From sequence record OP380601.1: a DNA stretch of 64,000 bases, one strand, 5' to 3'. A program made the position numbers and the translations under genes. Shown piece by piece: positions 379 to 24,672 of the stretch. Numbering within the stretch: position 1 is the stretch's first letter; every line of letters begins with the position of its first letter. The notes under the pieces were generated by a model. The model made no database searches. It was not told where the DNA came from and saw nothing but the letters and a program-made list of their open reading frames with translations.

Positions 379-1227
379 TTATTTCTTCATTATCATAGCC
401 CAAGTTTCCGGATTTGGAATATAATCAGCAATTTTACCAACAATGGCTTTATCCAATTCAGTTGCCTTCATCGGGGCTTTACCTTGTTGTTTCACCCTAA
501 TATAGTTGGCTTCTTTGATGTAACTACCACCTTTACCAGACTTGGCAAGTTCCGAGTCAACCCCCACTTGGTTAAAGGCGATATACCAATCACCATCCGC
601 ATAGTTCTTAGCACCTTCACCCATCGCCATTAGGTTTTTAAAGGTCATTGCTGCACCTTCATGGGTAGATACTAGAATTTCAAGAGGGACTGTACGACTA
701 CGCTTATTATTCTGATCGATAGCAACATCAACTTTGTTCATAACCCATACAATATGAACGTTTTCTTTTTCATATCCAAGATCCCTAACTTGTTTTGCAA
801 TTTGAGCCATTTTACCCATATCTTTCAAGGTAACGTCAAATATAATATTGGGTTTCCGTCCTTCTGGTGCGGCAAGAACCCCATCAAACACCCGCTTATC
901 CATTTTCTTGGTAGTCTTATATTCAGACGCAAGTAGATTATGGAGAGTAGATACGTTCTCTGGCTTCTTAAGATCAAACTGAGTAATATCGTGACCGGTT
1001 TCTCGCTTGATACGAGCAGAAAGCTTTGTAGACGCCATAGCCAGTTCTTTAACGCGATCAACATCAAGAACAATACCGTCCATACCTACTAATTTCGATG
1101 TTACAAAGCCCTTACCGCTACCGGCACCGCCCGCAAGAATAAGAACGTTTCCAAATTTCGGGTATGCTTTTTTACCAAATACCATCAATTTTTCTTCCAA
1201 CTTTACAAATTCACGAAATGTTTTCAT
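379..1227 (-). CDS. Zeta-toxin-like P-loop kinase
   Basis: Walker A ILAGGAGSGKG, DVD after the P-loop, IIFDVT Walker-B-like strand, NNKRSRTVP lid; late promoter at 1256-1262. Confidence 0.7.
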   Translation of the reverse strand: MKTFREFVKLEEKLMVFGKKAYPKFGNVLILAGGAGSGKGFVTSKLVGMDGIVLDVDRVKELAMASTKLSARIKRETGHDITQFDLKKPENVSTLHNLLASEYKTTKKMDKRVFDGVLAAPEGRKPNIIFDVTLKDMGKMAQIAKQVRDLGYEKENVHIVWVMNKVDVAIDQNNKRSRTVPLEILVSTHEGAAMTFKNLMAMGEGAKNYADGDWYIAFNQVGVDSELAKSGKGGSYIKEANYIRVKQQGKAPMKATELDKAIVGKIADYIPNPETWAMIMKK

Positions 1228-1994: not shown

Positions 1995-2545
1995 TGCATT
2001 CCCAACTTAACTATTAATGAATCCATTTTAAAGGCGGCATAACTTATAAGGTCATAAGTTTTAACACTTTCACCGTCTTCATTTTCGAAATAAGAACAAT
2101 TTGGTTTATTTGTATATTGTCTTTGTCCATTCGTACACGTAAAATACGGTTCATCAAGAATGATCAAACTATATTTTTCTATTCTACTACCTAAAACTAC
2201 ATGGTTATATGTTCCGCGAGAATAGAACTTATTGACAAAATCACTAATTGATAACACTTGATTTTTTAAATGCGGAGCAAAAGAAACAATAGCTCTCATT
2301 GTGGCGTTATTATGAACAATATAGAGTGCATCACAATGTTGTTCAAGTAACATCAAAGCCGCTGAAGTTTTACCAGTTTGTCTACCCATATCTAAACATA
2401 CGGTTGCAAACTCAGATTGAAAAGAATGTGGGGCTAGTTGAAGTCTCATTCTACTAACATAATCGGAACTCCTAAAGAGTTTCAACTTTTTATTTATCAT
2501 ACTAACGTATTCGTCTCTAAAGAAACTGTTTGGCGATATTATCAT
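1991..2545 (-). CDS. small terminase-like P-loop NTPase
   Basis: Walker A GRQTGKTS and Walker B LIILDE in 184 aa. Confidence 0.6.
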   Translation of the reverse strand: MIISPNSFFRDEYVSMINKKLKLFRSSDYVSRMRLQLAPHSFQSEFATVCLDMGRQTGKTSAALMLLEQHCDALYIVHNNATMRAIVSFAPHLKNQVLSISDFVNKFYSRGTYNHVVLGSRIEKYSLIILDEPYFTCTNGQRQYTNKPNCSYFENEDGESVKTYDLISYAAFKMDSLIVKLGMQ

Positions 2546-2568
2546 ATCTGTTTTACCTTTTTTAGTTG

Positions 2569-2796
2569 TTAATAAGCCATTGCAAACATACGACGTTGTT
2601 TTGCTCTAAGGTCTTCATTTTCTTTCTCTTTTAGCAGATCATCAGGAGTTGCATCCAGTGATACTTGCTTGGCTTCAACCTTATCCCAAAGTGGGGAGTT
2701 GTACCATTTTTCATTTCCACCATTAGCGGAACCTCTACCCTCACGGGCATGTTTCTTTTCGTGCATCATTGCCATAGAATTAACCTCAATATTCAT
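2569..2796 (-). CDS. hypothetical protein
   Basis: 75-aa ORF in the co-oriented gene string. Confidence 0.55.
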   Translation of the reverse strand: MNIEVNSMAMMHEKKHAREGRGSANGGNEKWYNSPLWDKVEAKQVSLDATPDDLLKEKENEDLRAKQRRMFAMAY

Positions 2797-3566: not shown

Positions 3567-3889
3567 TTATAGGCTTTTTATATACGTGATAACTCGTTTT
3601 AATATATCATCCGAATTTATTATTTCAATATCATCAAATGAATATTTTATTTTCTTAATTATAGTCTCTTTCTTCCATCCGATTTTTAATGCATCATTTA
3701 TGAAAGAATACCAATCTATAATATAACCTGAATTATACAGGGTTTCTATCATTACGTCTAACGGAACTCCATTAGTTTCATATTGATAGAACACGTTACA
3801 CAACACAGGAACACCATTGTTAGTATAACCATTTATGAAAATATTATTTTTACTTTTACGTCCTAACGGCTTGCGTTTAGCGGCGACAT
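3567..3889 (-). CDS. hypothetical protein, apparently frameshifted near its 5' end
   Basis: Open frame extends upstream of 3806 to about 3905 without ATG; SD GAGG plus ATG at 3889 is one base out of frame; YETNGVPLDV resembles the AlaRS YDTYGFPLDL helix. Confidence 0.5.
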
Positions 3890-3914
3890 ATACAACCTCA
3901 CAATTTTAGTTTAA

Positions 3915-4218
3915 CGGGATACAAATTAATGTGTCGATTTCTAGAGTCCCATACTCTTATTAGAAATCCAAAAATGATCTGGTCGCACCATCACCAGACT
4001 TAATAGCATTGGCTACCCGAGCCCACACATGTAAACCTCAAACACCCCAATGGATTACGCTTACAAGAAGGTCTTGCTCGTTACTTTACGCTTAGGCCCT
4101 GAGAAAGGGAATCTAAGCCATGTCTAATGTTTCCACTAGATACAGTCACTCTTTTACAAATACCGGTGGGCTAATTAAAGCGTCGATTCCCATAGACCGG
4201 ACTATTGACGGGAATCCA
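3915..4218 (-). ncRNA. candidate structured ncRNA B, immediately 3' of tRNA-Asp
   Basis: No ORF; hairpins at 3936-3968, 3978-3998, 4007-4052, 4090-4118, 4123-4140 and 4185-4216. Confidence 0.5.
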
Positions 4219-4221
4219 AAT

Positions 4222-4298
4222 TGGCGAGGATGACGGGACTCGAACCCGCGACCACCAACGTGACAGGCTGGTATTCTAACCAACTGAACTACATCCTC
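4222..4298 (-). tRNA. tRNA-Asp(GTC)
   Basis: GAGGATG acceptor, CTGTCAC loop, GGTTCGAGTCC, encoded CCA. Confidence 0.95.
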
Positions 4299-4303
4299 AT
4301 TTT

Positions 4304-4391
4304 TGGAGGAGAAGGAGAGATTCGAACTCTCGGAACCTTTCGGTTCACTCCCTTAGCAGGGGAGCAACTTAAACCACTCATTCACTTCTCC
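4304..4391 (-). tRNA. tRNA-Ser(GCT)
   Basis: CTGCTAA loop, long variable arm, TTCGAAT, CCA. Confidence 0.95.
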
Positions 4392-4396
4392 GAAAT

Positions 4397-4472
4397 TGGT
4401 GCCGAATGTCCGACTCGAACGGACCACCCCAGCGTTACAAAGGCTGTGCTCTACCAGATGAGCTAATTCGGC
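4397..4472 (-). tRNA. tRNA-Thr(TGT)
   Basis: TTTGTAA loop, TTCGAGT, CCA. Confidence 0.9.
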
Positions 4473-4484
4473 AGGAGGAATATA

Positions 4485-4745
4485 ATCAGGATCCGTAGAC
4501 TGTGATTACATCCTTGGTTGATACGCTATCACTAAGAGGAAGGGAAATCAACCATATTTTGTCCATCTGTTCGTAGTTTGGTTAAGGACAGTAACCTCTA
4601 GTTTCACCCTGCTAGTCAAGGGGTAGTTTCCATATCGTCTTTATACTACCAATCCCGCCTATAAATTACAAGCACTTTATAGGATATCCAGATTCTCTAT
4701 GGCTGGCTTCTTCCGGGGATATACGCCGTTATCCCGTTCTTGTGC
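4485..4745 (-). ncRNA. candidate structured ncRNA C, between tRNA-Pro and tRNA-Thr
   Basis: Seven back-to-back hairpins: 4488-4514, 4515-4554, 4560-4590, 4598-4615, 4622-4650, 4658-4683 and 4714-4736. Confidence 0.5.
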
Positions 4746-4750
4746 TAATT

Positions 4751-4828
4751 TGGTCCGTGTGGAAGGATTCGAACCTTCGATCTTCTGGTCCCAAACCAGA
4801 CGACTTAACCTGCCTAGCCTACACACGG
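4751..4828 (-). tRNA. tRNA-Pro(TGG)
   Basis: TTTGGGA loop in stem TCTGG/CCAGA, TTCGAAT, CCA. Confidence 0.95.
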
Positions 4829-4831
4829 ATA

Positions 4832-4902
4832 ATCTATTGAGTGGACTCGAACCACCAAAGTTCCGCAAACACCATCGCGGCTGCGTGTTGCCTACAATAG
4901 AT
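4832..4902 (-). ncRNA. degenerate tRNA-like element
   Basis: 8-bp acceptor-like stem ATCTATTG/CAATAGAT and T-arm GTGG-TTCGAGT-CCAC; aberrant D and anticodon arms; no CCA. Confidence 0.55.
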
Positions 4903-4904
4903 AA

Positions 4905-5110
4905 ATATATTTACCCCGTCTATATCTTCCGTTATCAGGTAAACCTATATGTCATTATATAAGCACGACCGAGGGAACTACAAAGATTCTGTCCGAGGGT
5001 TTTATCGGAACGTCTTCCAACTTCTGTTATTTGTCGGTCAAAACATCTACATTCTAACCAGCGTTGCGATTACAGGGTGTGAAACTGACTAAGAATCTAG
5101 AGCCCATAAC
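4905..5110 (-). ncRNA. candidate structured ncRNA D
   Basis: Nested stems GACCGA/TCGGTC (4967-5039) enclosing TCCGA/TCGGA, and ATTCT..AGAAT (5051-5096); no ORF. Confidence 0.35.
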
Positions 5111-5125
5111 CTAATTATAATCTAT

Positions 5126-5221
5126 TTACACATTTAACAAGAATCCACAATAACAGTCGTCATAGTCGTTACCACAAACGTTGCATGTATATGGATACTT
5201 TCTTACCTTGATTATTTTCAT
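5126..5221 (-). CDS. 31-aa Cys-rich micropeptide (CxxC...CxC)
   Basis: MKIIKVRKYPYTCNVCGNDYDDCYCGFLLNV; weak SD GAG. Confidence 0.45.
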   Translation of the reverse strand: MKIIKVRKYPYTCNVCGNDYDDCYCGFLLNV

Positions 5222-5237
5222 AAAAACTCATTAAAAT

Positions 5238-5314
5238 TGGTGGAGGATATAGGGCTCGAACCGATGACCTACTGGTTGCAAACCAGTCGCTCATTCCAAC
5301 TGAGCTAATCCCCC
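5238..5314 (-). tRNA. tRNA-Ala(TGC)
   Basis: GGGGGAT acceptor, TTTGCAA loop, CCA. Confidence 0.95.
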
Positions 5315-5319
5315 AAACT

Positions 5320-5394
5320 TGGCAGGCCCATGAGGACTTGAACCCCAGACGCACGGATTTGGAATCCGGCATGTTACCACTACACCATAGACCT
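5320..5394 (-). tRNA. tRNA-Trp(CCA)
   Basis: TTCCAAA loop, TTCAAGT, CCA. Confidence 0.95.
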
Positions 5395-5541
5395 ATTATT
5401 TTTTCGATAAACCCAGTTACTGAACGGACCTTATATTATGATCATATCCATTTCACAGCGCCAATCACTAGGACTTTATACTATTTATTGGATAAGATTT
5501 CCACAACTCCAATCATATCAATTATTAAGATTTACCAAAAC

Positions 5542-5625
5542 TGGTGGATACACTTGGATTCGAACCAAGAAGCCCGAAGGCTACGGTTTTACAGACCGCT
5601 GGCTTAACCATTTGCCTATGCATCC
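5542..5625 (-). tRNA. tRNA-Tyr(GTA)
   Basis: CTGTAAA loop, variable arm, CCA. Confidence 0.95.
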
Positions 5626-5632
5626 TATAAAC

Positions 5633-5708
5633 TGGTACATCGTGCTGGATTCGAACCAGCGACCCTGAGATTAAAAGTCCCATGCTCTACCTACTGAGCT
5701 AACGATGC
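5633..5708 (-). tRNA. tRNA-Lys(TTT)
   Basis: CTTTTAA loop, TTCGAAT, CCA. Confidence 0.95.
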
Positions 5709-5717
5709 ATTAAAACT

Positions 5718-5811
5718 TGGCGGAAGATGTGAGGATCGAACTCACAAGGCGCTATTAACGCTCGTCGGTTTTCAAGACCGATCCCGTCGCCTACCATCGG
5801 GTTGACCTTCC
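5718..5811 (-). tRNA. tRNA-Ser(TGA)
   Basis: CTTGAAA loop, long variable arm, CCA. Confidence 0.95.
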
Positions 5812-5818
5812 TAAACTT

Positions 5819-5936
5819 TTTTGTGTAACGGGACTCGAACCCGCACCATCAGGCGACTAAGGCCCGGTATTTACATACTTTTCAGTAATGGATGGAGTCG
5901 ATCCCATCATGTTCTAACCATTAAACTATACACAAA
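5819..5936 (-). ncRNA. tRNA-like RNA with the anticodon arm replaced by a ~65-nt multi-hairpin insert
   Basis: Acceptor TTTGTGT/ACACAAA, canonical D-arm TAGTTTAATGGTTAGAAC, T-arm GCGGG-TTCGAGT-CCCGT; no anticodon loop; no CCA. Confidence 0.65.
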
Positions 5937-5938
5937 TT

Positions 5939-6016
5939 TGGCTGGCGAGGTGGGACTCGAACCCACGACCTACGGTTTAACAGACCGTTGCTACTAACCA
6001 ACTGAGCTACACGCCA
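5939..6016 (-). tRNA. tRNA-Asn(GTT)
   Basis: CTGTTAA loop, TTCGAGT, CCA. Confidence 0.95.
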
Positions 6017-6066
6017 TACTAGTTCACGTTTCTTATCTGTTCATGATTTATGAACGTGAACACTAA

Positions 6067-6142
6067 AGGTTGCGAGTGGCTGATTCGAACAGCCGACCTA
6101 CAGGTAATGAGCCTGTCGAGATGACCACTTCTCCAACTCGCA
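6067..6142 (-). tRNA. tRNA-Met(CAT), probable initiator type
   Basis: TGCGAGT/ACTCGCA acceptor, CTCATTA loop; 3' end encodes ACCT rather than ACCA. Confidence 0.85.
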
Positions 6143-6152
6143 AGAATATTTA

Positions 6153-6385
6153 TAGTGTAACTGGTATCCCGAAAATTATAGCAAGTTAATTCAGATAACC
6201 CCGAAATACTCTTCTTACACTAATATTTAGGGTAGTCTTTTACCCTTCATGAGTCTTAGTCATTACGACTTGGCTACATACGCGCATCAACACCCCTTTT
6301 ATAATTTTAAAAGCTAGGGGACTCATACCAGCTTTATTGTTATCGTAAGGTCAATGACCATTAAATTCATGAGAGCTTACGACAT
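6153..6385 (-). ncRNA. candidate structured ncRNA E (possible pseudoknot)
   Basis: Stems 6153-6160/6215-6222, 6161-6167/6325-6331 (crossing), 6249-6255/6320-6326, 6258-6270 and 6343-6349/6376-6382. Confidence 0.45.
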
Positions 6386-6390
6386 TAATT

Positions 6391-6468
6391 TGGTGGGCCT
6401 ACCCGAGATTCGAACCGAGAACCGATCAGTTATGAGCTGATTGCACTCACCAATTGTGCTATAGGCCC
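6391..6468 (-). tRNA. tRNA(CAT), probably Ile2 (lysidine type)
   Basis: CTCATAA loop; GGGCCTA acceptor with C4/C5 as in TilS substrates; 1-nt bulge in the T-stem; CCA. Confidence 0.8.
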
Positions 6469-6476
6469 TTTAATTT

Positions 6477-6552
6477 TGGAGCGGGTAACGTGACTCGAAC
6501 ACGCGACATTCTGATTGGAAATCAGAAGCTCTACCAACTGAGCTACACCCGC
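6477..6552 (-). tRNA. tRNA-Gly(TCC)
   Basis: TTTCCAA loop, CCA. Confidence 0.95.
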
Positions 6553-6559
6553 ATAAATC

Positions 6560-6643
6560 TGGTGGGGATGGACGGACTCGAACCGTCACGCTATAAGCGC
6601 CAGAACCTAAATCTGGTGTGTCTGCCAATTTCACCACATCCCC
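6560..6643 (-). tRNA. tRNA-Leu(TAG)
   Basis: TTTAGGT loop, variable arm, CCA. Confidence 0.95.
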
Positions 6644-6649
6644 GAATTT

Positions 6650-6726
6650 TGGTGCGCCGTGCTGGATTCGAACCAGCGACCCACGCTTTAGAAGAACGTT
6701 GCTCTATCCAACTGAGCTAACAGCGC
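6650..6726 (-). tRNA. tRNA-Arg(TCT)
   Basis: CTTCTAA loop, TTCGAAT, CCA. Confidence 0.95.
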
Positions 6727-6740
6727 ACATTTATATACAC

Positions 6741-6771
6741 ATCATATCACGATATTCGATGGTGTGTAAAC
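6741..6771 (-). promoter_or_regulatory. early (sigma70-type) promoter of the tRNA operon
   Basis: GTTTACA-N18-TATGAT with TG extension; T4 early-promoter -35 GTTTAC. Confidence 0.7.
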
Positions 6772-6775
6772 TTTT

Positions 6776-7171
6776 TTATTTCGTCAATTGTTCATAAATT
6801 CTAATAAGATTCGATTTATAGAACGGGAAGTTCTCATTATACACCACTTCAGGGTCTGATGTAAACACCACACGATATGCAGTTCGTTTACCACTCATAT
6901 AATCAGCTTCCATTGTATCATCAAAATTGAATTCTGCATAGCCTTTTCTACGAAGAATTCGACAACTTACACTAAGCCAAGGACCACAACACGACCCAAG
7001 ACGTTTAATAATGTAAATCTCTTTATCATCCTTATTTAGGTAGCAATAAATTTCATCTTTTTCTTCCCATTCTGGGTCGGTCTGTTTATACAAGATACCA
7101 GATTGTACCAATGTCAGACCCTTCTTGACGAATTTAGAAACTCCTAGTTTGTATTTTTCATTACGTGTCAT
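6776..7171 (-). CDS. hypothetical protein
   Basis: 131-aa ORF with SD GGGAG. Confidence 0.65.
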   Translation of the reverse strand: MTRNEKYKLGVSKFVKKGLTLVQSGILYKQTDPEWEEKDEIYCYLNKDDKEIYIIKRLGSCCGPWLSVSCRILRRKGYAEFNFDDTMEADYMSGKRTAYRVVFTSDPEVVYNENFPFYKSNLIRIYEQLTK

Positions 7172-22847: not shown

Positions 22848-24672
22848 ATTTTTCTATGGGGTGGTTGAGGATCGGTTTGATCCTCTTCACCAAGGAAGAT
22901 ATAGAGTTCGAGTATTCGGTATACATACGGACCAAAAATCAAAAAGTGATTTGGTGGGTATACCTACTGAAGAACTCTTATGGTTCCATGCTGCCACATC
23001 AACTGATTCTGCATCGATTTCAGGTATAGGGAATAGCCCAACTAACCTTATTGAAGGTTCTTGGGTTATGGGGGTGTTTAGAGACGCATTTCGTCAAGAC
23101 GGATTGATACTGTTTAGTATCCCCGGTTCATATACGGAACAACCTAATACGTTGAGAGGGTTTTGTGATCCTTTTGGTAGATTTCCTAGATATGTCGGAA
23201 ATGATGTTAATATCCTTGCCGGTGGTGGACAGAAGGGTAATAGTATATATGGATCTTCTCCACCGGTATATGACGGAAAACCTATCGGCGTATATACTCA
23301 GGACGAAAATACAACTAATGCAGTTGCACCGGATGATAGAGATATCGCTGATGTAAAACCTGACGATGATCCAGATTTCACAATAGAGAAAATGCTTAAG
23401 GGTGATGAAGGTGTTAGAAATGACGTATATTGGGATCATCTTGGATATCCTACCGTAGGTATTGGTCATTTAATAGTTTTTGAAAAAACCCGAGATATGG
23501 GTAAAATAAATTCTATATTGTCCCAACAATTAGGAAGAAAAGTTAACGGGGTTATTACTGCCGAGGAAGTATCTACTTTATTTGAGAGTGATATTAATAA
23601 AACTCGGGCTGATATGTTGAGATTTGAAAACATACGGAGTGTGTATATAAAAGTAAACCGTTCTCGTCAAATGGCTCTTGAAAATATGGCGTTCCAAATG
23701 GGGGCGGGTGGACTTTCTAAGTTTAGAACTACATTAGATCATATGTATAATGAACGTTGGAAAGAAGCTCAACAGGGTATGTTAGACTCTCTGTGGGCAA
23801 AACAAACACCGGGTCGCGCAAATCGGGTCGCTAGAATCGTATTGACAGGAAACTTAGAATCTTATGGGGTTATGGTCAAAGAAGATGATCCAATTCCGCC
23901 CGCGCCACTTTCTCTAATGAGAATGGGAAGAACTATGGTGTTTTCTGCATCTCCATTGATAGAAGAACCCGACCCTGATGATCCGTCAGTTCCACCGGTT
24001 CCTAGAGATGATGGATTACTATTTGAAGAACCTAAAAGTGCTTATAATGCACAATATCCATATAACCATGTATACGAATCTGAGAGTGGTCATGTTCAAG
24101 AATTTGACGATACTCCCGGCGCAGAACGTTATCATTTGAAACATCCATCAGGAACTTTTTTAGAGGTTTCTGGTGATGGTCGTCAATTAAATAAAGTATA
24201 TGGTGATGATTTTACTATTGACATGGCTAATAAAATGGTCAACGTCAAGGGGGATTATCAAGTTGTGGTTGAAGGTAATGCAACGGTATACGTTATGGGT
24301 AACTGCTTACAACAGGTGGATGGTAATCTAACTCAGGTTGTCAAAGGAAACGTGTCTGAGACGATACATGGGGACGTTGACCAGACAATCAAGGGCAATG
24401 CCAAGCAAACCATAAACGGTAGCTTAGAATCGCGTACAGACGTTGATGTTACTATGTCTGTTGGTGGAAATGTGGTTAGTGAAATAGAAGGTAATTTGAC
24501 TGCTACTGTTCAAGGTAATTGTAATCAAAATGTTGAGGGTGATATGTCTTTAAACGTGTTGGGTGATTACGATGTTACTGTGGCAGGTAGTTACAAATCA
24601 CAGGCTTCACAATCGCTTATTACTTCTCAGGGTACAACTGAAATTAGTGGTGCAACTGTTAGTATTAACTAA
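22837..24672 (+). CDS. gp5: baseplate hub spike and tail lysozyme
   Basis: FFYGVVEDRFDP OB-fold, DEGVRNDVYWDHLGYPTVGIGH T4-lysozyme domain, YPYNHVYESESGH, VxGN beta-helix repeats. Confidence 0.97.
   Translation: MISEFFYGVVEDRFDPLHQGRYRVRVFGIHTDQKSKSDLVGIPTEELLWFHAATSTDSASISGIGNSPTNLIEGSWVMGVFRDAFRQDGLILFSIPGSYTEQPNTLRGFCDPFGRFPRYVGNDVNILAGGGQKGNSIYGSSPPVYDGKPIGVYTQDENTTNAVAPDDRDIADVKPDDDPDFTIEKMLKGDEGVRNDVYWDHLGYPTVGIGHLIVFEKTRDMGKINSILSQQLGRKVNGVITAEEVSTLFESDINKTRADMLRFENIRSVYIKVNRSRQMALENMAFQMGAGGLSKFRTTLDHMYNERWKEAQQGMLDSLWAKQTPGRANRVARIVLTGNLESYGVMVKEDDPIPPAPLSLMRMGRTMVFSASPLIEEPDPDDPSVPPVPRDDGLLFEEPKSAYNAQYPYNHVYESESGHVQEFDDTPGAERYHLKHPSGTFLEVSGDGRQLNKVYGDDFTIDMANKMVNVKGDYQVVVEGNATVYVMGNCLQQVDGNLTQVVKGNVSETIHGDVDQTIKGNAKQTINGSLESRTDVDVTMSVGGNVVSEIEGNLTATVQGNCNQNVEGDMSLNVLGDYDVTVAGSYKSQASQSLITSQGTTEISGATVSIN

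Follow-up and report, generated by a model that had tools for sequence, protein, structure and literature searches.

The spacer between the tRNA-Pro and tRNA-Thr genes of Aeromonas phage avDM6 holds what we consider likely to be a member of an uncatalogued family of ~190-nt RNAs of phage tRNA arrays, which, we infer, would be freed from the tRNA precursor, remain stable and act in trans by binding a factor. The alignments show a conserved, strand-specific fold with three predicted pseudoknots that is resident in tRNA arrays. On comparative grounds, the family is a new one of a known general kind, the non-tRNA stable RNAs in phage tRNA clusters, and its matches place it in virulent phages that infect Enterobacterales and Aeromonas, within their tRNA arrays. 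A coding gene, a pure spacer, a DNA element and a decayed tRNA are disfavoured as readings of the same stretch.

The window analysed here, a stretch of 64,000 nucleotides, derives from avDM6 (OP380601, Straboviridae, Ishigurovirus; positions 3800-7000 are 100% identical), and window coordinates equal record coordinates minus 62000. ARAGORN and Rfam place a tRNA array on the minus strand, running from 6726 down to 4222. The minus-strand genes of tRNA-Pro (4751-4828) and tRNA-Thr (4397-4472) leave a spacer of 278 nt between them (4473-4750, minus strand), which confirms the gap in which an earlier note, made by a model from the letters of the window, had proposed a structured RNA. The GenBank record carries no annotation within 4473-4750. 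The CCA 3′ end of tRNA-Pro abuts the 5′ end of the core RNA (Table 1). Two unusual tRNA-like genes occur upstream in the array. Directly upstream of tRNA-Pro, ARAGORN reports a 72-nt “tRNA-???” with the four-base anticodon ggtg (4831-4902 (-)), which is absent from both the Rfam tRNA model matches and the GenBank annotation. Between tRNA-Ser and tRNA-Asn, a 116-nt match to the Rfam tRNA model (5820-5935 (-), 44 bits, above gathering in a permissive scan) resembles a tRNA with a long insert, and its equivalent in phage 65.2 is annotated as tRNA-OTHER (118 nt).

Table 1. Features of the spacer RNA and its surroundings in avDM6, in transcript order (window coordinates)
Feature	Position	Strand	Remarks
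Promoter-like site TTTACA-18-TATGAT with TG	6741-6770	(-)	Just upstream of the array's first tRNA; consensus match
tRNA-Pro (UGG)	4751-4828	(-)	Immediately upstream of core RNA; ARAGORN and Rfam
Core RNA gene, ~190 nt	4750 to ~4560 (4559..4750)	(-)	R1 match; begins right after the tRNA-Pro CCA
PK-a 5′ strand GCAC	4742-4745	(-)	Partner GUGC in P4 loop, 4672-4675
P2 hairpin GGGAUA...UAUCCC	4716-4735	(-)	6/8 pairs with compensatory changes
P3 hairpin CCAG...CUGG	4688-4706	(-)	Variable loop; compensatory changes at 4/5 pairs
P4 hairpin, 8 bp in avDM6	4658-4683	(-)	Compensatory at 6/6 modelled pairs; 99.3% of cells pair
J4/5 linker with CGGG	4651-4657	(-)	Nearly invariant family-wide; conserved columns in alignments A2 and A3
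P5 hairpin GGUAGU...ACUACC	4622-4650	(-)	6/7 pairs compensatory
P6 hairpin CCUUG ACUAG CAGGG	4607-4621	(-)	99.2% of cells pair; 2 compensatory pairs
PK-b 3′ strand CUAG	4598-4601	(-)	Pairs with P6 loop; 100% of cells pair
P7 hairpin GGUUA CUGUCCU UAACC	4580-4596	(-)	100% of cells pair; 2 compensatory pairs
P8 region	4567-4576	(-)	4-bp hairpin in enteric-phage members; ~2 bp in avDM6
PK-c 3′ strand GGAC	4561-4564	(-)	3′ edge of conserved core
3′ extension, ~88 nt: hairpins E1 (4515-4554) and E2 (4476-4514)	4473-4558	(-)	MFE z = -3.5
tRNA-Thr (UGU)	4397-4472	(-)	Downstream of gap; ARAGORN and Rfam

Folding energy was dropped as evidence for the core. The MFE z-scores of the whole gap (-0.69 and +0.04 for minus and plus strand, respectively) and of the core alone (the upstream 192 nt, +0.68) are not significant, and because single-sequence folding is no better than that of shuffled sequence, the stems by themselves are not above chance. 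Comparative evidence was used instead. We built a covariance model (R1) from an alignment (A3) of 13 non-Aeromonas sequences, from enteric phages and metagenomes only, with seven nested helices written from inspection. R1 matches 4559-4749 (-) over model positions 1-191 (81.2 bits, E ~1e-24), an independent detection because the model holds no Aeromonas sequence. This match is the only one within the 64-kb window; elsewhere in the avDM6 record, outside the window, positions 24280-24418 (+) give a weak R1 match (15.5 bits, E 0.005) that is probably due to chance. The kinship suggested in the earlier note with four other gaps of the array (its ncRNA B and segments A, D and E) is not supported: besides the single R1 match, a search tolerating 3 mismatches found the core motif only once in the window, and the other gaps, compared by BLAST with the arrays of other phage groups, gave just one weak 56-nt match.

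Covariation was evaluated in an alignment (A6) of 24 distinct sequences and 52 pairs, to which the three pseudoknots had been added by hand. Standard pairs occupy 95.9% of the cells, compared to 23-40% when the partners are slid by 1-3 columns, with the reservation that cell counts overstate independent events because the sequences form a few tight clades. Changes on both sides were seen at 34 of the 52 pairs (shuffled mean 20.3), the covariation score is 0.46 versus 0.04-0.08 after sliding the partners by 1-3 columns, and none of 500 shuffles matched the observed A6 value. The nested-helix alignment was itself fitted to the R1 model. The three pseudoknots also covary cleanly, and because they lie outside R1, their covariation is not a fitting effect. 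As regards family membership, the avDM6 copy gives a full-length R1 match, P2-P7 and the three pseudoknots are able to pair, and it lies inside the tRNA array on the tRNA strand.

By these comparisons, a core fold of seven hairpins (P2-P8) locked by three pseudoknots (PK-a, PK-b and PK-c) is well supported as a prediction, and in avDM6 the strands of all three pseudoknots are Watson-Crick complementary (GCAC/GUGC, CUAG/CUAG and GUCC/GGAC). PK-a joins the 5′ end to the P4 loop, which bears its 3′ strand, and is found as CCAC/GUGG, GCAC/GUGC, CCUC/GAGG and CUAC/GUAG, the last in the IMG/VR contig L020; its column pair 5/95 counts 14 CG, 7 GC and one AU. P2 has a conserved loop type (A-N-G-R-Y-G-Y-A), and the P5 loop motif GACGAUA is the same in 21 of 21 sequences. 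P6 directly abuts P5, its compensatory changes include a C-G to A-U replacement between avDM6 and phage 65, and its loop residues 4612-4615 form the 5′ strand of PK-b, for which CUAG/CUAG, CAAG/CUUG, CUGG/CCAG and further G-U variants were observed. PK-c, whose 5′ strand consists of the P7 loop residues 4586-4589, shows six Watson-Crick variants (GUCC/GGAC, AUCC/GGAU, ACCC/GGGU, GCCC/GGGC, UUCC/GGAA and UCCC/GGGA). Pairing in the Aeromonas copies is weak at P8 and in the outer part of P2; their rows are gapped or unpaired at helix 10, and P8 is doubtful in the avDM6 copy.

All seven stems that the earlier note had listed are present in the sequence, and its description of the gap as seven contiguous hairpins stands in part. 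Five of the stems fit supported helices, namely 4714-4736 (P2), 4658-4683 (P4), 4622-4650 (P5), 4598-4615 and 4560-4590, but the last two are pseudoknots and not hairpins: the former is PK-b (the P6 loop CUAG with the downstream CUAG) and the latter PK-c (the P7 loop with the 3′ tail). The other two, 4515-4554 and 4488-4514, are the hairpins of an extension found in Aeromonas phages only. P3, P6, P7 and PK-a were missing from the list. In addition, the unit of ~270 nt proposed there is too long, the conserved unit being ~190 nt with the last 88 nt absent from ZPAH1 and from all non-Aeromonas members.

This extension, which in avDM6 lies between PK-c and tRNA-Thr and terminates 3 nt before the latter, is the sole part of the gap whose folding energy stands out (z = -3.5 for the last 89 nt, with none of 200 shuffles equally stable). 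It is present in phage 65, avDM6 and Ceceduovirus, and in ZPAH1 the last ~90 nt are swapped for unrelated sequence. E1 shows one compensatory change, G-C to A-U in P19. A few bases before tRNA-Thr, the 3′ strand of E2 (4476-4488 (-)) resembles a -10 element (TGATTATATT); the site is TATAAT in some Ceceduovirus phages and scores only 9/12 in a consensus scan. The extension might double as an internal promoter. In the record of Aeromonas phage Aszh-1 (L013:600-904, labelled UNVERIFIED), the 5′ third of the RNA is swapped for a duplicated 3′ extension plus part of tRNA-Thr, an arrangement that would reflect either a rearrangement or an assembly error.

The 77 G-U cells of the alignment render the fold strand-specific (pairing is 95.9% in the tRNA sense and 90.0% in antisense). 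No reading frame is open across all family members. The 63-aa and 87-aa ORFs of the window, whose translation and conservation would have spoken against an RNA according to the earlier note, run through tRNA-Pro, and the 63-aa ORF is split by an insert in phage 65. The R1 match, the covariation and the lack of a conserved open frame bear out, on the tRNA strand, its proposal of a structured non-coding RNA as opposed to a spacer or coding sequence. The same data argue against a reading at the level of DNA, in which the stretch would be a promoter cluster, a site of recombination or replication or the target of a homing endonuclease, and its palindromes incidental. Phage tRNA arrays are hot spots for such endonucleases, as shown by segB of T4 and a segD-like gene of SdyM_006, and the insertion in phage 65 lies exactly at the RNA edge; however, the compensatory changes preserve pairing and not sequence, the G-U pairs make the structure strand-specific (95.9% vs 90.0%), and long-range pseudoknot covariation is meaningless in duplex DNA, so that we regard a DNA-level element as very improbable.

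Over its full length, the gap shares 95% identity with phages 65 and 65.2, and 84-86% with Ceceduovirus phages such as CC2, P19 and AS-zj. Ceceduovirus genomes align to 22-34% of the 3.2-kb array, essentially the tRNAs and the gap, and cover 98-99% of the gap itself; we count this retention, with most of the remaining array not aligning, as an indication that the gap is under selection. Beyond the Aeromonas phages of the genera Ishigurovirus, with the T4-like avDM6, and Ceceduovirus, the middle of the gap has matches in Bragavirus (Proteus phages Pm5461 and PM2; Shigella phage SdyM_006) and in the T4-like Morganella phage Mm5. Further carriers are jumbo phages of the genera Alcyoneusvirus (K64-1, RaK2) and Asteriusvirus, the latter with 121Q, PBECO4 and many more, Salmonella SD phages among them, as well as the T5-like Novosibvirus (Proteus phage 1) and Stephanstirmvirinae (Klebsiella phage KP13-16). 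Pattern scans added the IMG/VR contig L020 and five metagenome loci, four of them distinct (L030 repeats L027). As far as the matches tell, at least seven phage groups that are unrelated to one another keep the RNA in their tRNA clusters. The genomes of avDM6 (the window copy), 121Q, RaK2 and Pm5461 have one copy each, and T4 has none. The only two-copy case seen is contig L031, in which two diverged copies (2103-2284 (-) and 2420-2608 (-)) flank a tRNA-Arg(acg).

Wherever tRNAs were called in a fetched locus, the element lies on the tRNA strand. Its neighbours are tRNA-Pro and tRNA-Thr in Aeromonas phages, tRNA-Gly and tRNA-Asp in Bragavirus, tRNA-Leu and tRNA-Ser in Novosibvirus and KP13-16, and an ORF and tRNA-Glu in Mm5. 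Judged by this distribution, the RNA is a self-contained module that has evidently spread horizontally among phage lineages. A structured spacer acting in cis, which would aid the folding or processing of the neighbouring tRNAs or protect the precursor and would have no independent life, could explain the location in tRNA arrays on the tRNA strand as well as the two stable hairpins of the Aeromonas tail 3 nt before tRNA-Thr. We consider it improbable, however, in view of flanking tRNAs that differ by lineage and of the 121Q copy, which has its own promoter and ORFs on either side. Invariant loops and three covarying pseudoknots would also be superfluous for a spacer, and elsewhere in the array, spacers are conserved among close relatives only.

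A search for a partner protein shared by the loci, covering Pfam matches of ten small ORFs flanking the RNA in five phages, found none, the only match being a YadA-anchor domain in Mm5. This match belongs to a 137-aa ORF upstream of the RNA; both are on the same strand as the tRNAs called by ARAGORN, and the record of this phage (L015, vB_Mm5, PP397179) annotates the tRNAs on the opposite strand. The junction of tRNA-Pro and the RNA is interrupted in phage 65 by a 295-nt insert, absent from avDM6, whose precise position marks the 5′ edge of the RNA. The insert of phages 65 and 65.2 (L002:2615-2907, L003:2609-2884) contains a 91-aa ORF with no Pfam match, whose stop codon overlaps the first bases of the RNA. 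Escherichia phage G17, a close relative of 121Q, has a truncated copy followed by a CDS (L044:701-767), with only the first 36-67 nt of the RNA left; phAPEC6 and two other Asteriusvirus records match the first 36 nt only. The RNA is therefore dispensable in these phages.

A host origin found no backing in 5,426 complete E. coli genomes, which gave no match, and no copy of the RNA was found in species-representative bacterial genomes. Two pattern matches in Latescibacterota MAGs and one in metagenome contig L032 were rejected as chance, having no R1 match. A loose pattern scan of IMG/VR yielded 73 loci, of which none beyond the known members scored with R1.

Several observations bear on the ends of the RNA. 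In five lineages (avDM6, Bragavirus, L031b, Novosibvirus and KP13-16), its 5′ end lies 0-2 nt from a tRNA CCA, and in Bragavirus, Mm5 and Novosibvirus the next tRNA begins 6-15 nt past PK-c, both of which fit the earlier proposal that the ends are defined by tRNA processing. In 121Q and in the related metagenome contig L028, a sigma-70-like promoter (11/12) ends 2-7 nt before the RNA; the 121Q copy lies between ORFs, and neither it nor the L028 copy has an upstream tRNA. Together, these positions support a discrete RNA, with a predicted 5′ end at or just before PK-a and a predicted 3′ end just after PK-c. The promoter-like site upstream of the avDM6 array (Table 1) is a candidate start of a polycistronic tRNA transcript; the count of promoter-like sites in the region is not above shuffle expectation. 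Among four public sequencing runs compared with 801 letters of the window, contigs of two true metatranscriptomes fall on the tRNA parts only, and the contigs that span the gap are probably DNA.

In avDM6, the RNA would be transcribed within the tRNA precursor. By analogy with tRNA processing in T4 and E. coli, an endonuclease would free its 5′ end by cutting right behind the CCA of tRNA-Pro, RNase P would make the downstream cut at the 5′ end of tRNA-Thr, and the RNA would persist as a stable species with or without the 88-nt two-hairpin Aeromonas tail. The folded RNA would then bind, in trans, a conserved factor of host or phage that has a link to tRNA or translation, for example as a decoy or inhibitor of a tRNA-directed nuclease or of another RNA-binding protein. 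A specific ligand or partner is suggested by the near invariance of the unpaired GACGAUA, CGGG and UGAC. Antisense pairing and cis-regulation are less likely modes of action.

The main alternative, which we judge unlikely, is a ribozyme with an active site formed by the triple pseudoknot, which might cleave itself at the 5′ edge and so free the CCA of the upstream tRNA, or carry out other RNA processing. The fold is unusually intricate for its size, GACGAUA (P5 loop), CGGG (J4/5) and UGAC (P6) are unpaired and nearly invariant, and because only 0-2 nt separate CCA and RNA in the five lineages, a precise cut is needed at the RNA 5′ edge. Such cuts, however, require no ribozyme: host RNase E and RNase P are enough for them in E. 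coli and T4. Since the RNA of 121Q and L028 has its own promoter and no upstream tRNA, a role in tRNA release would also not be general. Finally, none of the known ribozyme families gives a match up to E = 10, including the self-cleaving hammerhead, twister, pistol, hatchet and HDV-like ribozymes of Rfam across 3700-7000.

Comparison to known RNAs assigned the element to none of the catalogued families. In Rfam 15, the avDM6 copy has no match up to E = 10, nor does the RNA of seven homologous loci reach the gathering score of any family; apart from tRNAs, scans of the window and these loci returned a single group I intron, located elsewhere. The odd tRNA-like genes at 4831-4902 and 5820-5935 of the same array might raise the suspicion of a decayed or intron-bearing tRNA or of what is left of an intron, but neither ARAGORN nor Rfam (RF00005, at gathering score or E up to 10) finds a tRNA within 4473-4750, and the group I intron model (RF00028) does not match the RNA in any locus. 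With a fold that has no cloverleaf and is conserved across several unrelated phage families, a tRNA or intron relic is hardly credible. Resemblances noted by eye to domain IV of SRP RNA, to CR-I/P4 of RNase P and to a Shine-Dalgarno-like GAGGU were rejected because the residues vary or are paired and no Rfam model scores.

The closest parallels are the small stable RNAs rnaC and rnaD of T4 (species 1 and species 2), which are cut from the tRNA precursor and, like the RNA described here, are encoded in the tRNA cluster of a T4-type phage, on the tRNA strand and abutting tRNA genes. At 139 and 119 nt they differ in length from the ~190-nt RNA, however, and share no sequence or structure homology with it: within the tRNA region of T4 (L008), R1 has no match up to E = 10, and its best match elsewhere in T4 has 8.5 bits (E 0.64). 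By eye, rnaC has a tRNA-like 3′ arm, which the avDM6 RNA lacks. YrlA and other bacterial Y RNA-like RNAs, some of them phage-borne, are linked to tRNA-like modules and act by binding the protein Rsr; in contrast, the avDM6 RNA has neither a tRNA-like domain nor a long terminal stem, and sub-threshold Rfam matches to YrlA in the window fall on real tRNAs, with none on 4473-4750. ROOL RNAs are several hundred nucleotides long. The avDM6-type RNA, in comparison, is ~190 nt long and found in virulent phages of Gammaproteobacteria, and the GOLLD (RF01998) and ROOL (RF03087) models match neither the window copy nor the seven homologous loci. GOLLD (>800 nt) and ROOL are ornate pseudoknotted RNAs of phages and prophages, of unknown function and often near tRNA islands, and form multimeric cages (PMC12286853). 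Our literature searches found no description of the RNA. A comparative-genomics screen of IMG/VR listed 10,006 unnamed candidate structured RNAs (Fremin et al. 2023, PMC10690425), and its main text contains no description of such an RNA. IMG/VR includes 121Q, RaK2, phage 65, CC2 and Pm5461, and the avDM6-type RNA could be among these unnamed candidates.

The clear exchange of the RNA between phage families implies a portable benefit. Phage tRNA arrays are now viewed as counter-measures to host tRNA depletion and tRNA-cleaving defences. To our knowledge, no function has been assigned for decades to the non-tRNA RNAs of such arrays (T4 rnaC and rnaD, GOLLD, ROOL). Going beyond the stable trans-acting RNA that we favour, we tentatively entertain a compact phage RNA effector that moves horizontally between the arrays of unrelated virulent phages (T4-like, T5-like, rV5-like and jumbo) and, once freed by tRNA-processing enzymes, binds a conserved host machine and neutralises or redirects it, or is itself catalytic. 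Its targets might be the ribosome, an immune nuclease directed at tRNA, or an enzyme that processes or modifies tRNA. If so, the RNA would play the part that known anti-defence genes leave to proteins, and would travel together with tRNAs that are carried against tRNA-cleaving defences. Because the RNA is small and its fold well determined, with three testable pseudoknots, the role of extra RNAs in phage tRNA clusters is now directly testable; its size suits routine genetics, probing and structure work, and its carriers infect E. coli, Klebsiella, Proteus and Aeromonas. For annotators, R1 provides a model for a region that has been left blank or mis-called as short hypothetical proteins (121Q gp129, ORFs of Salmonella SD phages).

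Some further observations concern the surroundings of the RNA in other phages. On a 259-kb IMG/VR contig (L046), positions 4374-4546 (+) begin right after a tRNA-Leu CCA and show, by eye, PK-a, P2, P4, J4/5, the P5 loop, P6 and PK-b without P3 and P7; it is a possible reduced relative of the RNA, left out of the family because it reaches only 10 bits with R1 with filters off. Behind the RNA, jumbo phages of the 121Q and K64-1 types have a second non-coding stretch that is conserved (L005 ~1090-1180 (-), L006 ~1090-1140 (-), L027 and L030), possibly another small RNA gene; by eye, it is preceded in K64-1 by its own promoter, TTGAAC...GATATAAT. Finally, the tRNA-array region of the 121Q-like metagenome contig L027 contains a group I intron at 6148-6462 (-) (Rfam, 99 bits), 0.8 kb from the copy of the RNA.
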